From: Pelomyxa schiedti
Lineage: Eukaryota; Protista; Evosea
Reading direction: 5' to 3'
NCBI GenBank assembly: GCA_020536535.1
Contig: JAHLWZ010000192.1
Location: 1 to 63,413, forward strand
Length of the DNA: 63,413 bases
This document shows positions 1 to 54,000 of this stretch, piece after piece. Below the pieces are notes generated by a model that made no database searches, was not told where the DNA came from, and saw only the letters and a program-made list of their open reading frames with translations. Positions within the stretch are counted from its first letter, which is position 1, and every line of letters starts with the position of its first letter. Made by a program: the position numbers and the translations under genes.

Positions 1-238
1 TACCTCGATGCTACCATAATTGTGCGGAGGTCGTGAAGAGGCGTGTGGAGAATTCTCTTTTATTATGTTCGGTCTGTGGCCTTAAAAGGACCCACAATTA
101 GTCACCATCACCTCAGCACACTGGGTCTTGGTTTCTCCTTAGATTTTCTCCACTGGGTGAGAAGAATCGGTGATCGACTTGTGTGTGCTGGTGGTTGTTG
201 TTGTGTCTGACTGTTTACCTTTTCGTCAGTTACCTTCA

Positions 239-2438
239 ATGAGTGGTGCTACACCCCCGGCGGTGGCGGTTGGAGAGTCGTCCGCGACCACGAAGCCCGT
301 AGCGAGTCGTTCTGAATGCTTTCAAATACACACCGCTTTAGGCCACCATAGTAATGGGTCTTGAAATATGACAGCTGGCTGTCAGAGTCTTCAATGAGGG
401 GATTAGGTTTGAGGTCCAGGCGAGGTGAGTCAACATGGGAAGCAATGATGTTGAAACCACGCTCTGAGAGCATTTTTAGGAGTTCAACCAGCCGCACAGG
501 AATGAAGAAAGAAAGTAATAACAACCAACTCCCTCGGTGCCAATAACGGCAAGCATAAGGTTCTTGCCCCTGAACGGAATGATAACCTTGTCACCAGGGT
601 GTAAGGCCGTGATATCATTTGACAATATCCTAAACCCTGCAGCTTCAGCCATTTTCGTAGCTGTTTTATTTGTTAGCATTAGTGACAACCCGGATCGATG
701 GCTAAATAGAGAATGTATAGAAAGAAAAAGAAAAAAGGAAAAGGAAGAAACAAACATAAAAACAGTTACCCTGCGTAATTGCAGACCTCTCAGTCTTCGC
801 AATGGACAAGAATTCCATGTACTTTGTGGCAACTGACTTTGCCTGCGCCCTGTCCACAGAATTCCACGCGGACCTCATGTCCCGCGTAAGTGTCTTCTCC
901 ATCGCGCCCAAACCACTTCCTCAATCGTCAGTCACACTGCAAAGATATCAATGGGTGCAAACACCTTTGGCTCTTGTTGGAGTTGTTGCTCTTAAGTCAG
1001 GGGAAGTCAAAGAAATCAGTTGACATTCGACCAAGTGTTGCTTTCCATGTAACTATTTACAAGGTGTCGGCCTTAAACCAGAAGATCCTGTTTTTGTCAT
1101 CCCTGATCTACTTCCACACTTGGCAACTAGACTCCAGGTGCACCTTTCTTAAGTGTTTGGAAATACTTACTCCTATTCTCCTGAAGTCAACAGCCACTAT
1201 GGGTGATATAATCAAAGGCGAACAAATGAATGTACTTTGCGGGTCAATACCTGTGGATGATGAAGGTGTCAAGGCAAAAATTAAGTTTACTGTCCTCGAG
1301 ACACTGAATAGAGAATACGGAGTTACTGAAGCCGATTTTGTATGTAAAATGGCTGCAATTTCCTTCACCTATGTTTTTTTTTTTTTTTTAGCTCTCTGCC
1401 GAGTTGGAATTGGTTCCTGCATTTCCACCGCGGTTTGTTGGATTTGACTGTGGTCTTATTGCTAGCTATGGGTAAAAATATCTTTTCACCACTTATCTAT
1501 TTATTTTCTTTGCAGCCAAGACGACAGAATATGTGCCTTTTCTAATATATCCGCAATAACCACTTTGACTTCTATTCCGTCGAGAACGGCGGTTGCTTTT
1601 CTAGTGGATAAAGAGGAAGTGGGAAATCAAGGTTCCACAGGTTTGTTGTTAGTCGATTTACATCTTTTATTGAGATTTCCAGGGATGGATTCTATGACAC
1701 TTTATCACCTACTGAGCAAGCTTGTTTATTTAACTGACAACACTGGCCGTACCACTGAGGTATGAGTCCATGCACTCACAATCAACTAAAGGCAAAAGTT
1801 AAGGGTCCGAGAAATTCTTTCAAGATCGTCTGCACTTAGCACTGACGTTACTGCTGGAGTAGATCCCAACTTCCGCGAGGTATATTACCGTGTATTCCTT
1901 TTGCTTTTCACTCTCAATCAGGTTCACGAAATGAAAAATGCAGCCAAATTAGGTTTTGGGCCGTGCTTCATGAAATATGCCGGTGCACGTGGCAAATCAG
2001 GCACAAACGACGCAGATGCAGAATATATAGCAATGCTTCGTGCCCTTTTTGATACACATAACGTTGTCTTTTCCTAAAGGTTCTTTTTACTGCTAAGTAA
2101 TAACCCGTTATTAGGTCTCTTGGCAAATGGCAGAGCTAGGAAGGGTATGTCCATAAACAACAAGCAACCCAAAAAAAAAAAAAAACCCTCAAACCAAACT
2201 GATTCTAACACAAAAAGGTCGATGAAGGAGGAGGTGGAACAATAGCACCACGCCTGGCTTCGTACATGATCAATACCATTGACCTCGGCCCTCCTCTGAT
2301 TGGAATGCATGCTCCCTATGAACTATCTAGTGTTGCAGACGTGTGTATCCAGCAAACAACAGCAATCTTCTCACGTATCCACAGCTCTACCTTATGGTCA
2401 AAGGCTGCTCTGTATTCCTGCAGCATTTTAATCCCTAA
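239..2438 (+). pseudogene. M18 family aminopeptidase (bacterial ApeA/aminopeptidase-1 type), disrupted as assembled by an internal inversion of 308-914
   Basis: The + strand starts MSGATPPAVAVGESSATTKPVAS (239-307). Within 308-914 the - strand encodes YMEFLSIAKTER...GFNIIASHVDSPRLDLKPNPLIED...FKTHYYGGLK. From about 946 the + strand resumes with YQWVQTPLALVGVV, DPVFVIPDLLPHLA, LSAELELVPA, YGQDDRICAF, VDKEEVG, KYAGARGKSGTNDADAEY, GGGGTIA and GMHAPYE, ending at TAA 2436-2438. These are M18 metal-ligand motifs. Confidence 0.9.
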
Positions 2439-2527
2439 TGAAAGCCGGCCTGTTTTCTTCCACACATGAATTAAACACAATAAAAAAGTAAAGCCTAGGC
2501 TTTTTCTTTACTTTTTGTATCAACTTA

Positions 2528-5118
2528 TCAAAACCCCAGTCCCCTTCTTCCAATAGGCATAGAAGGAAGTACAGGGGCAGTGGTTCCGTGCTCATCAGCA
2601 CCAAGGCCTTGACCCTCCTTCCACCCCATGCCACTCAGCATCCTGTATCCTTTGTTGTCACTGGTGAGAGCGGCACCTTGATCCGTGGTGGGGGGTGTTG
2701 ACCCATCCTCACCATAGAGGGTTCTTCTCTTGGGGTATGAGCCGGGTTGCTGTTGCTGTTGCTGTTGTTGAGCCGGAGTTGCTCCATCATCCTCAGTGGA
2801 ACCAAGTTCTCTACGAGCCTGGAGTTGTGTGTAGGTCTCTTTGGGGTACAATCTTCTTCTCTTGGCGGCCCTGTCTTCATACTTCTCCTTGCGGTTGACT
2901 GTCAGCTTTAGTTCGGTACGGGTGAGGGTCTTGACATTCTTTTTCAGTACTTCCACCCATTCGGAGGAAGATACTTGAACACCTCCGAGGTTGTATGTGG
3001 GATGAGAAGATGATGTGCAATTAGAAGTTGACTCTGCGGGAGTCGGGTTGGCGTCTGGCTTTTTTTCCGGGTGTTCGAAAGTGATGTCAAACTTGCCAAT
3101 GTGAATGACGTCACCTGAAAATCGTTACAGTTGACACATATTTACAGGGCAGTATACCGGGATACAACCTCAGCTGATTTTCAGCTGGGGAGGACTTGTT
3201 GTACGTCAATTTAATGTCATTGACATAAGTGCCGTTCCTGCTACCAACATCAGATCTATGAAGCAGCTTGGTGTAAGTTTACTGAATTCAAAAATTAAGT
3301 CTTGTCAAACTGGAGAACTTAAAATAATAAATAACTAAAATGGAAGGCTCTCAGATACATCCGGAAGTAGTATTCCCAGAATAAGCTCTCATAAGTCATG
3401 GATGCATGATGCTTGCTTACTTCAACATCACGTAGAACCACATCGCATGAAGAAGAACGACCAAGTTTTATTGTGCAAGGGTGCCCTTCCTGGTTTCCAA
3501 CAGATACTTTCTGGTCAGGCAACTTCCCAGTTGTATCATGCACAATCAGCTCCATCACTGGTCCGCTTTCATCACCATCATCACTTGCATTTTCGCATTC
3601 CTCCTTAGTACTTGGTATTCTAGATCTTCTAACACCATAATCAAAATCGTCGTTGCATACAACAACTGCCGCTGCAGGCAACACCATTGCATACTGCCCA
3701 GAAGCTGGATTCCAGTGGTAGGCAACTGGCGGAGAACACGAAAAGTTTGCATGAAGACCACTCTTTGGGTCCCAATGAAGCTGGGTCTCAGTATCGTAAT
3801 AAATTCCTCTCCCCCAGTCAAACACCATTCGCGCAGAGTAGGCTTGTTGTTGGGATGGAGATTGAGGTAATGGAGGTGGTGGTGCTGGAGATGCTAGAAG
3901 GCGCACACGAGAACCATCCCTTTGGAGTTGTGTTAGTTCATAGTGATTAGTGTTGAGTACTGGCATCATTTCCCCAGTTTGAGGATTCCAGTGAAAACTC
4001 AGAGTTGTTTTTTTGTGAAACCAGTATAAGTTGGTGCTGTCGTCGTAGTCAAGTGTACAAGGTGATGCAGGAATGCAATTTACATGTGATACAGGCAAGA
4101 ATACATGAGTTGTGGGGTGAAGGTGATAGGAAAATTTGGTACTGGTGGCATGAAAATAGAGATTTGATTCTTTGTGGAGCTCATATTCCGGTTGTGCTTT
4201 AGCTGAAGAACTGGTGTTATCTTCAGAATGGGTACTTTGAGGTTCACTTGCTGCTTGAGTGTAATTATTTTTTCCTTCTTGTGTTTGTCCATGTTGTTGC
4301 GGTGGCTGTTGTTCTTGCTGTTGAGTGCTGGGTTGTGATTGCGCTGTTTGTTCTTTTTGGGGCTGTTGTGGTTGGGGTTCCGTAAGTTGTGCCTCTTTCT
4401 TTGGGCATGCGTGGCTACTAGACTGAGGTTCGTGTGGAGGCACCACAGCCAAAATTTCAACAGAATCTGAAGAGTCCGTTTCCGTTGGAGAAGTCTCCTG
4501 GTTCTCAGGTGGGTTTTTTGGCAGGTCAGATTGTGTAAGTTGGCTTGGATTTGGGGAGCCCGGAATAGAAGTGGTAGAGATTTCTTCCGGAGGTTTCAGT
4601 TTGTCAGGGGGTTTATGAGTGTTCGGAGGTTCTTCCTTAGGGCTAAGGGGGGATTGTTCAGGAACTGTTTTGGGTCTTGTGCCCAACGGAGGTTTTTCAG
4701 TGGAAGCCTTCATACGGGGCACAATGGGCATGAATAAAGTCCTTGATGGGTTCCAGTGATACCAGCAACAAGTGCCCACGTGGAAATACAAGTCAGAACA
4801 GGAATCGTAAGAGAATGCCACAATTTCGACGGTCTTACTGCGAGAACCGGAATTGGTCGTAGGGCAGGTACAACAACATGCCGCCGAAGACGATGTCGTT
4901 GTTGGAGCACCATTATTCAGGCGAGGGTTTTGGGAGTAAACTTTTCTATGAATCGCAACAGTAGATGAACTATAAGACGCGGAATTGTGGCACACGCAGG
5001 GACACATCGTGGTGCTCCCTGGAGGAGGTGTGAGTGCAGCCGTGACCAGAGTCATGTTTTGTGGTTGTCCTTCCCCGCCGGCGGTACTTCCACACGAACC
5101 ACTCTCTCTAGTCGCCAT
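2528..5118 (-). CDS. AGGF1-like protein: OCRE-like aromatic repeats, FHA domain and C-terminal G-patch
   Basis: FHA motif IKLGRSSSCDVVLRDVEVSKHHA...DVGSRNGTYVN; KYEDRAAKRR followed by G-patch NKGYRMLSGMGWKEGQGLG...GRRGLGF; OCRE-like YYDTETQLHWDPKSG. Confidence 0.85.
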
Positions 5119-22069: not shown

Positions 22070-22578
22070 TTGCCCACTTATGCATCCCTCTCCTCAAGAG
22101 ACCCAAGCAAGTCAACAAGGTGTGGGGCAGGAAGGTAATTGGCGTGTGGAGAACTTGCAGTTTGTGCAAGGTGATGTGTGCCAACACACCTCTTTGTGCT
22201 GGTGTGGTGTGTGAGAAGAGAGCAAGGGGAGTTTAGAGAAGAAGTGCAATTGGCATGCATCACCTCCCAACCACAAAACCCACACCCAACCTTTCTTCCA
22301 CCCCCACAACCTTTTGCCCACTTATGCATCCCTCTCCTCAAGAGACCCAAGCAAGTCAACAAGGTGTGGGGCAGGAAGGTAATTGGCGTGTGGAGAACTT
22401 GCAGTTTGTGCAAGGTGATGTGTGCCAACACACCNNNNNNNNNNNNNNNNNNNNNNNNNNNNNNNNNNNNNNNNNNNNNNNNNNNNNNNNNNNNNNNNNN
22501 NNNNNNNNNNNNNNNNNNNNNNNNNNNNNNNNNNTCTTTGTGCTGGTGTGGTGTGTGAGAAGAGAGCAAGGGGAGTTT
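22070..22578. repeat. Direct repeat of about 165 bp (period 244 bp); the second copy is split by a 100-N gap
   Basis: 22070-22234 recurs at 22314-22434 plus 22535-22578. The two gap flanks (ccaacacacc / tctttgtgct) are contiguous in the first copy. Confidence 0.9.
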
Positions 22579-50942: not shown

Positions 50943-51674
50943 AAAAACGAAAAGAAAAACAGGGTTGCTGTGTAACGTTTGTGGCGATGATACAACAAAA
51001 AACCGTCCTTGCGTTTTAGTAGATCTCATTTATCTGCTAATTTTTTTTCTGTTATCACTTTTTAGGGTTTTGTAATTGGGAAGATCCCAGAGATCCCAGA
51101 TCCCAGAGATCCTGGTCGGAATAACCTTCCTGACGTCGCTCTATCGTTTAGTGGGCTGACACCAATTCCTTAGGAGGGTTTAGGTGGTACAACTCTCGTA
51201 GTGGTACGACGGTTTTTTTTATTTTGTGGTATTGGCCTGACGATTCAAGTTCAGCAGAGGGTGTTGGGTTTGAAAGCCAGTTTCTCTGAAATCTGTCCGT
51301 TTTTGGTTGTTGAAACCTTTTTGGGGTTTTCTCCCTTAGAAAAGAACGAATCTGTCCCTCTACAGGCTCCCAGCGCCCCACACTTCCAGGACCCTGCAGA
51401 GGATGTTACCGCAGCTGTGGCAGTCCTCTGAATGTTCGCACATCCACTTGGCCAAGACCCCTGAATTAACGGGAAAACAATCAGTTGCCCGAACAAGAAA
51501 AAAAAAACACATCCCGATGACGAGGTGGCCCGGTGTCGTGACCAAAACAAACAACACACAGACGGGGGCCGGTGGCGGAAAGCGTACGGATCACATATGA
51601 AGACATACAGAGCAAACTCACGCCTACAGCAGGTTGTCGTCTGCTTTTTATAAAAAAACTCTATATTATTCGCG

Positions 51675-51679
51675 TTTTG

Positions 51680-51737
<58 letters not shown>

Positions 51738-51883
51738 GTTTTGTTTTGTTTTGTTTTGTTTTGTTTTGTTTTGTTTTGTTTTGTTTTGTTTTGTTTTGTT
51801 TTGTTTCGTTTCGTTTCGTTTCGTTTCGTTTCGTTTCGTTTTGTTTTGTTTCGTTTTGTTTCGTGTTGTTTCGTTTTGTTTGT
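51675..51883. repeat. (TTTTG)n/(TTTCG)n pentanucleotide microsatellite near a scaffold gap
   Basis: About 40 pentamer units visible directly. Confidence 0.95.
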
Positions 51884-52077
51884 CTTGTATCGTTCTTCCT
51901 TAGTCTTGTGTTAAACTTACTGTTGTGTTCCATTTCCTCACGGCAACATAGGGCTGATTCCCTGCGGCACTCAGTCANNNNNNNNNNNNNNNNNNNNNNN
52001 NNNNNNNNNNNNNNNNNNNNNNNNNNNNNNNNNNNNNNNNNNNNNNNNNNNNNNNNNNNNNNNNNNNNNNNNNNNNN

Positions 52078-52348
52078 ATGTATAGAAAGAAAAAGAAAAA
52101 AGGAAAAGGAAGAAACAAACATAAAAACAGTTACCCTGCGTAATTGCAGACCTCTCAGTCTTCGCAATGGACAAGAATTCCATGTACTTTGTGGCAACCG
52201 ACTTTGCCTGCGCCCTGTCCACAGAATTCCACGCGGACCTCATGTCCCGCGTAAGTGTCTTCTCCATCGCGCCCAAACCACTCGCTACGGGCTTCGTGGT
52301 CGCGGACGACTCTCCAACCGCCACCGCCGGGGGTGTAGCACCACTCAT
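52078..52348 (-). CDS. Second copy of the M18 aminopeptidase: 5' exon in the uninverted configuration, truncated by a gap
   Basis: Reads MSGATPPAVAVGESSATTKPVASGLGAMEKTLTRDMRSAWNSVDRAQAKSVATKYMEFLSIAKTERSAITQ continuously. 52078-52282 matches 713-917, and 52280-52470 matches the reverse complement of 118-307. Confidence 0.9.
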
Positions 52349-52624
52349 TGAATCTAATCGACGAAAAGGTGAACAGTCAGACACAACAACAACCACCAGC
52401 ACACACAAGTCGATCACCGATTCTTCTCACCCAGTGGAGAAAATCATAAGGAGAAACCAAGACCCAGTGTTGGTCGGGAAGAAGAACTGCATTTTTGGAC
52501 TTGAACCATTCGGAGAAAACCTCATCATCATCAGTTCCCAGCTTGAACGGGTTTCTGAGATGAAAGTTTTCTTTCTAAACGTTGAAAACTTCAAGTTCTT
52601 GCTTTTGCAAAACAACAAGAAAGC

Positions 52625-54000
52625 ATGGCGTGCAGCCGGGTGAGAGATGTAACGGTAGTTGCGGGGCTGGTGTTGGTGGCCGCTGTGTCCTTGTCGCTGT
52701 GCGACAACGATGTGTTTGTTGTCACGCGAGATCTGGTTTCCGCAGTCAACAACGACCCCCGCGCCACATGGCGTGCGTCACTCGACACCCCAACGTCTCG
52801 CCTCACACGTGGCGAGGCCAGAAAACGGCTCGGCGGTGTGGATCTTACTAACGCGGCGAGCGCCAGCGAGCAAGGATTGAATGCCGCTGTGGACCTGCCA
52901 GAGTCGTTTGATGCACGGCAAGCGTGGCCCCAGTGCGAGACAATAAGACAAATCAGGGATCAGAGTGATTGTGGGAGCTGGTATATAGTCCCTTCTTTTC
53001 CTGCACTTTAACGGGCAATCATTCATCCCAACCAACATGAAAATTTCTTTTTTTTCAGCTGGGCTTTTGGCTCCACAGAAGTGTTCTCTGATCGAGAATG
53101 CATTTGGGGTGGAAAAACTGTACTGTTTCCTCTTTTGATATTGCATATCTGTTATGATAACATCTCACAGAACCTGCCCCTATCAGTAACTGATGTTCTA
53201 TCCTGCAGCGATTGCGGGACATGTGAGGGTGGCTCTCCTTGGTGCGCATTCGAATACTGGGCAACCCCTGGTGTTATTAGTGAGGCCTGTGTGCCTTACC
53301 CTCTTCCAGGTGAATTCCTTCTTTTTTTTTTTTTTTTGTTTGCCAACACGAGCTGACTTAGAATTGTAGGGTGTGACCACCACGTCAATGACTCTTCAAA
53401 TCTGTGCCCTACAGATTATATGTATGATACTCCAGAATGTAGCACCAACTGTACCGTTGAGGGTGAACAGTGGATAAAATACCAAGCAGATTCTAAAAGT
53501 CTTGTAAATGTAAAAGGGGAACAAGGTATTACGTGTGCAACCATTATTCTACACTAACGCATATCGAAGCAATTATGACCGAAATTTATAACAATGGCCC
53601 CTGCACTGGAGGTATCAAGAATTGTGCTTTCTTAACACTTATGTTTTTGCAGACCTCTCAGTTTACGATGACTTCCTTGCCTACACTGGTGGTGTATATC
53701 AACATCTGTATGGGGAATATGATGGGGAACACATTATAAAATTTGTTGGCTGGGGCGTTGAAAACGACGTCAAGTAATGGCTTCTCAATTGTTCACGTAC
53801 TCATTTTTAACAAACTAAACAGATACTGGATTGTGGCCAACTCGTGGAATAGGTAAATGACTCCAATCCTTTTCGAATCTAATCCGTCTAATCCTTGTAA
53901 TGTAGTAATTGGGGAGAGGAAGGGTTTTTCCGAATTCTTCGTGGAACAAATGAATGTGGTATTGACAACTTTTGCTATGGTGCTAAACCACTCTGAGTAA
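52625..54000 (+). CDS. CTSB: Cathepsin B-like cysteine protease
   Basis: Signal peptide; [27 protein letters not shown] (catalytic Cys), CEGG, occluding loop [17 protein letters not shown] (His), YWIVANSWN (Asn), [14 protein letters not shown]. Confidence 0.96.

Follow-up and report, generated by a model that had tools for sequence, protein, structure and literature searches.

In one of two near-identical copies of an M18-family aminopeptidase gene of the multinucleate amoeba Pelomyxa schiedti, a piece of 607-613 bp lies in place but in the reverse orientation, and we judge it probable, at roughly two chances in three, that this is a real, fixed and balanced one-off inversion that nulls one allele or recent paralog. 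The gene belongs to the window, the 63,413-nucleotide stretch analysed here, which is the whole of scaffold C192 in an assembly of 52.4 Mb and 5337 scaffolds. An earlier note on this DNA had claimed an inversion of about 607 bp inside the gene, with 239-307 on the + strand, 308-914 on the - strand and the remainder on the + strand again. The sequence, the exon phases and the splice borders confirm the inversion, and the strand pattern is borne out by the sequence and by a Pfam match that is split across the two strands. The features of the rearranged copy (copy 1), and of the fragment of a second copy (copy 2) farther along the window, are as follows.

1-120, + strand: dispersed repeat of ~100 bp (core about 18-120), in the place of copy 2's unique upstream sequence
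118-238, + strand: proximal upstream sequence and 5' UTR in copy 1, shown by alignment to be homologous to those in copy 2
239-307, + strand: start of exon 1, 23 codons, MSGATPPAVAVGESSATTKPVAS
305-307, + strand: left half of the microhomology, AGT
308-914, - strand: inverted block (sequence, Pfam PF02127, alignment to 2GLF)
770-914 (914->770), - strand: exon 1b
661-769 (769->661), - strand: intron 1
526-660 (660->526), - strand: exon 2
464-525 (525->464), - strand: intron 2
334-463 (463->334), - strand: exon 3, holding the metal-site motif SHVDSPRLD
308-333 (333->308), - strand: first 26 nt of intron 3
915-917, + strand: right half of the microhomology, ACT
915-944, + strand: 3' 30 nt of intron 3
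945-1018, 1064-1137, 1187-1339, 1392-1471, 1516-1640 and 1683-1759, + strand: downstream exons
1799-1879, 1922-2062, 2115-2144, 2218-2340 and 2385-2438 (stop TAA), + strand: downstream exons, continued
51978-52077, no strand: 100-N scaffolding gap that ends copy 2
52078-52470, - strand: fragment of copy 2 in which the left junction is uninverted, by alignment to copy 1

The reading frame opens with the ATG at 239, and after codon 23 it is continued not by the letters that follow but by the reverse complement of 308-914, which begins GLGAMEKTLTRD and is in the same frame as codons 1-23. The gene returns to the + strand at 915, where AG at 943-944 closes the 3' part of intron 3 and exon 4 follows from 945 (R/YQWVQTPL). 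That a flip would restore both junctions, as had been proposed, is what we found: with the block flipped in silico, 239-307 is joined to 770-914 as exon 1, and the gene consists of 14 in-phase exons with GT..AG introns and 1491 nt, equal to 496 codons and a stop, each exon being checked in its own phase. The restored intron 3 measures 56 nt, and the introns of this gene in the RNA contigs measure 39-73 nt. Eight introns between 1340 and 2384 are confirmed by spliced RNA contigs, and a check of phase and stops over 915-2438 was clean, in agreement with the claim that no further lesion lies downstream. The left breakpoint falls within exon 1 at codon 23/24 and the right one 26 nt into intron 3. 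The trinucleotides AGT and ACT that had been named as the breakpoints are both present and form a 3-bp inverted microhomology; the size of 607 bp holds as a minimum, as the breakpoints are ambiguous within the microhomology and the flipped piece may reach 613 bp. The two reciprocal junctions fit exactly, without loss, gain or duplication of a base, which is what two breaks and a flip would produce directly. As assembled, the copy-1 frame runs into antisense sequence, such that MSGATPPAVAVGESSATTKPVAS is followed by 18 antisense-derived residues and a stop at 362-364, giving 41 residues. No exact product of either of the two ORFs running across an inverted junction was on record, and the 185-aa junction ORF, used in a word search, yielded no relatives.

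The assignment to the M18 family was made with the exons searched singly, never joined into one protein. In an exon-by-exon search with Peptidase_M18 (PF02127), two exons score above the curated cut-off of 24 bits: exon 3 on the - strand (profile positions 64-100, 31.4 bits) and 2218-2340 on the + strand (positions 380-420, 29.1 bits). Lower-scoring matches on the + strand are 1066-1137 (positions 134-152, 15 bits) and 1517-1639 (positions 234-277, 21.7 bits). A whole-genome Pfam search similarly splits the gene, with M18 positions 61-100 matched at 342-467 on the - strand and positions 371-424 at 2191-2352 on the + strand; the two scores are 28.8 and 31.8 bits. The + strand pieces downstream of the block are collinear among themselves. 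As assembled, the profile as a whole is not collinear on one strand (61-100 on -, 134-424 on +), and becomes so only after the in-silico flip of 308-914. Its nearest solved structures are bacterial proteins named 'M18-family aminopeptidase 1' (2GLF, 2GLJ and 1Y7E). Exon 3 aligns to residues 84-123 of 2GLF (E 2e-14), an alignment that covers the HxDSPRLD and THYYGG motifs and sets SHVDSPRLD of exon 3 against AHIDSPRLD of 2GLF, and residues 395-435 are matched by the C-terminal exon. We take the histidine of the HxDSP motif to be a zinc ligand, as in the M18 family generally. The Pelomyxa gene thus shares the HxDSPRLD and THYYGG motifs of the bacterial-type M18 aminopeptidase 1 (ApeA), but unlike it has 13 spliceosomal introns, and in copy 1 its first three exons are scrambled. 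A second, distinct M18 gene, collinear and apparently intact, is located elsewhere in the assembly (C288:1023-2476, - strand).

The native order of the left junction is present in copy 2, which contains the 5' UTR and an uninterrupted exon 1 (...KPVASGLGAMEK...ITQ), continues into intron 1 and ends at the 100-N gap at the point equivalent to 713. Across the 121-nt UTR it differs from copy 1 by five substitutions and one indel (at about 142, 216, 228, 229, 233 and 234), and across exon 1 by one synonymous difference at 834; by these counts, the UTR is richer in differences than the sequence downstream. The copy-1 letters at the differing sites are T216, AG228-229, CC233-234 and A834 (gene strand). 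The copies bear no relation to each other upstream of 118, where copy 1 has the dispersed repeat, 120 bp before its ATG, and copy 2 has unique sequence. As the native junction comes with its own differences and with a different upstream sequence, orientation is tied to the copy or haplotype. Copy 1 in native order was found nowhere in the assembly, in which 312-712 and 918-2500 each occur once. The region upstream of copy 2 likewise occurs once; had a haplotype with a repeat insertion been assembled separately, a second version of this region should be present, and there is none. Upstream of copy 2 is a divergently oriented gene for a papain-family (cathepsin B-like) cysteine protease (52625-53310, +), in which one exon has a weak Peptidase_C1 match of 18.7 bits and CGS/WAFGS motifs can be recognized by eye.

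The DNA behind the Pelomyxa schiedti SKADARSKE assembly came from seven single cells amplified with phi29 (GenomiPhi), and was assembled as a SPAdes --sc hybrid co-assembly with Nanopore reads, followed by P_RNA_scaffolder on RNA-seq pairs (PMC8887013). This scaffolder links contigs by RNA-seq pairs and inserts 100 Ns between them, with the implied introns allowed to reach a set maximum that was 100 kb here (PMC8887013). The two gaps in the window (22435-22534 and 51978-52077) are each exactly 100 N, the filler of this program. Pairs from a native transcript would match exon 1 on contig C, which holds copy 2 (- strand), and exons 2-3 in the inverted block of contig A (- strand), and so would yield the observed order and orientation. 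M18 transcript pairs matching the inverted block therefore probably account for the join before 52078, in which case the order of the contigs may not be physical, and the 52-kb distance between the copies would be uninformative on their physical linkage. No M18 exons are present at the right end of the middle contig, contig B (49.5-52.0 kb), so the gap is not an obvious hiding place for the remainder of copy 2. This end closes, just before the gap, with a long (TTTTG)n/(TTTCG)n microsatellite (51660-51880).

The assembly contains at least 25 matches to the repeat at the scaffold start, many of which lie at contig ends, and all aligned copies stop at 120 (...CAGCACA) and then diverge. It is sometimes paired, with 407-428 bp between the members (e.g. 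L005:1094-1215 and 1518-1639; also in L006 and L004). Its words are very deep in both DNA runs described below, and it is also found in RNA contigs, joined to differing downstream sequences. An Rfam search of the repeat at two other loci gave no match, which sets it apart from known small-RNA genes. Candidate roles are a promoter/5'UTR module and the short terminal repeat of some small mobile element.

Evidence on the individual runs was drawn from contigs, rather than raw reads, of four public runs, two of DNA (X1, X2) and two of RNA (X3, X4). X1 and X2 carry one common sample code and are probably the data behind the assembly, and their independence we only infer. In X1, a single 4232-bp contig is collinear with 92-3000 at 0 mismatches; it crosses both junctions, is unbranched and shows no strand-change joint. 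In X2, a 5071-bp contig over 305-3000 crosses the right junction and starts 3 letters before 305, i.e. within 3 nt of the left breakpoint, leaving 201-300 and the start of exon 1 uncovered, so that 201-300 is covered only in X1. Both contigs bear the copy-1 letters. The depth of the repeat relative to that of the gene is 821 vs 18.3 in X1 and 758 vs 46 in X2, ratios that differ about 2.7-fold, and this difference, together with the unequal cover of the start of exon 1, suggests that the two runs represent two different amplification products. The spliced RNA contigs of X3 and X4 cover only about 1262-2476 and do not reach the block. At 1990 the letter is C in both RNA runs but T in both DNA runs and in the window, a synonymous difference (CGT->CGC); the expressed copy thus seems not to be the assembled one, which fits expression from the other copy.

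These contigs bear directly on how the inverted order could have arisen without any inversion in the cell. That the published co-assembly simply erred here, in assembly or in scaffolding, is most improbable. Such an error might be suspected in a hybrid single-cell co-assembly scaffolded by RNA pairs, the more so for a gene at the very start of a scaffold and adjoining a repeat, but the single-run contigs, made by another assembler, give the same order base for base; since separate contigs cross the junctions, the inverted order is in the reads and was not made by the SPAdes co-assembly or the scaffolder. Furthermore, a 3-bp inverted match is too short to confuse a k-mer graph, and the block is interior to a contig, away from any N gap. 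Of the chimera that the earlier note had offered as one option, the co-assembly or scaffolding form is thus contradicted by the per-run contigs, and the amplification form stays as a rival, given phi29-amplified DNA and one sample code. This second form would be a phi29 MDA double template switch at AGT/ACT, out and back at the same sites, that was amplified early and became locally dominant, the genome's own copy 1 being native. We regard it as unlikely, but as the most serious of the rivals. Among MDA rearrangements, inversions make up more than 85%, and more than 70% carry 2-21 nt of complementarity (Lasken and Stockwell 2007, PMC1855051), a range that takes in the 3 nt found here, and the Pelomyxa block resembles these chimeras in that it is inverted, spans a short distance of about 600 bp, has a short microhomology and comes from DNA amplified in this way, by GenomiPhi from single cells. 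The X2 contig also ends at the left breakpoint, and as the RNA contigs stop short of the block, neither junction is viewed free of amplification. MDA inverted chimeras are, however, minority molecules with a single inverted junction and a deletion of the intervening sequence (PMC1855051), whereas here both reciprocal junctions are present with nothing lost, in keeping with the earlier remark that a two-breakpoint event is less typical of a simple single-junction chimera. A random chimera should also be a minority, yet the inverted path is sole and unbranched at full local depth in X1, and its right junction is crossed in X2. Orientation is, in addition, linked to copy-specific letters on either side of the left junction, and the native copy-1 haplotype that an amplification product would leave in the genome is absent from the assembly.

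It had also been suggested that the block is a reversible ON/OFF switch, and the corresponding reading, that two states of one locus alternate or that orientation differs among the nuclei of one cell, has very little probability in our estimate. In its favor, the left junction occurs in both orientations in the assembly and an exact flip gives back a perfect gene. The two orientations are, however, on different flanks (six differences in the UTR and one in exon 1, and repeat vs unique sequence upstream), so that no mixed orientation is seen on one haplotype, and the unbranched X1 contig has a single orientation only. There are no flanking inverted repeats beyond 3 bp: a search of 100-1200 for longer repeats revealed none that pairs the breakpoints among the 25 longest of 33 pairs found, which agrees with the earlier statement that inverted homology is limited to 3 bp. 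Breakpoints within a codon and within an intron are, moreover, an undesigned arrangement. The switch is for these reasons not upheld. Hin/Gin/Cin invertases and the FimB/FimE fimS switch are alike in having a segment that occurs either way round and yields an intact gene in one of the two orientations; the Pelomyxa block differs from these bacterial and phage switches in its lack of flanking inverted repeats, in its breakpoints within a codon and an intron, in having its orientations on different haplotypes or paralogs, and in its eukaryotic host. The broader notion, that small in-place inversions are habitual in Pelomyxa genes and that this one is a heritable two-state element turning a housekeeping peptidase gene of a eukaryote on and off, we likewise hold to be barely credible. 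Twin priming of a retro-copy was also considered, and is ruled out by the retained introns and the internal position of the inverted piece.

A one-off inversion that nulled an allele or recent paralog, one of the options first put forward as a recently inverted duplicate or null allele, gives the best fit to a native second copy, an orientation linked to copy-specific differences and a gene that is otherwise undamaged. Under such an inversion, two breaks would have been made, one in exon 1 and one in intron 3, and the ends rejoined with the piece flipped, probably in vivo and through the 3-bp microhomology by either end joining or a replicative template switch; about 5% of random blunt joins should show microhomology of at least 3 bp, so it is weak evidence. 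The flipped copy would make a 41-residue product at most, lacking the exon with the predicted first metal-binding histidine, and this limit and the loss of the metal-site exon indicate that copy 1 is null. The event would be recent, as the rest of the gene is intact, and the inverted state is presumably fixed and does not flip. The other copy would be native in order and is probably the one expressed.

Small balanced inversions that give null alleles or pseudogenes, through two-break end joining or a microhomology-mediated template switch, are alike in their exact reciprocal junctions and 3 bp of microhomology, and they likewise lack recombination sites and leave one copy disabled and another intact. 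The Pelomyxa case shows no essential difference from this class; its unusual feature is its source, the amplified single cells of a multinucleate amoeba. Even if confirmed, the inversion would not be a system of a new kind. It is probably the scaffolder, and not physical linkage, that put the partial copy 52 kb away. The main value of the finding is as a caution in the reading of a phi29-amplified single-cell assembly that was scaffolded by RNA pairs, in which gene models at such places will be truncated.
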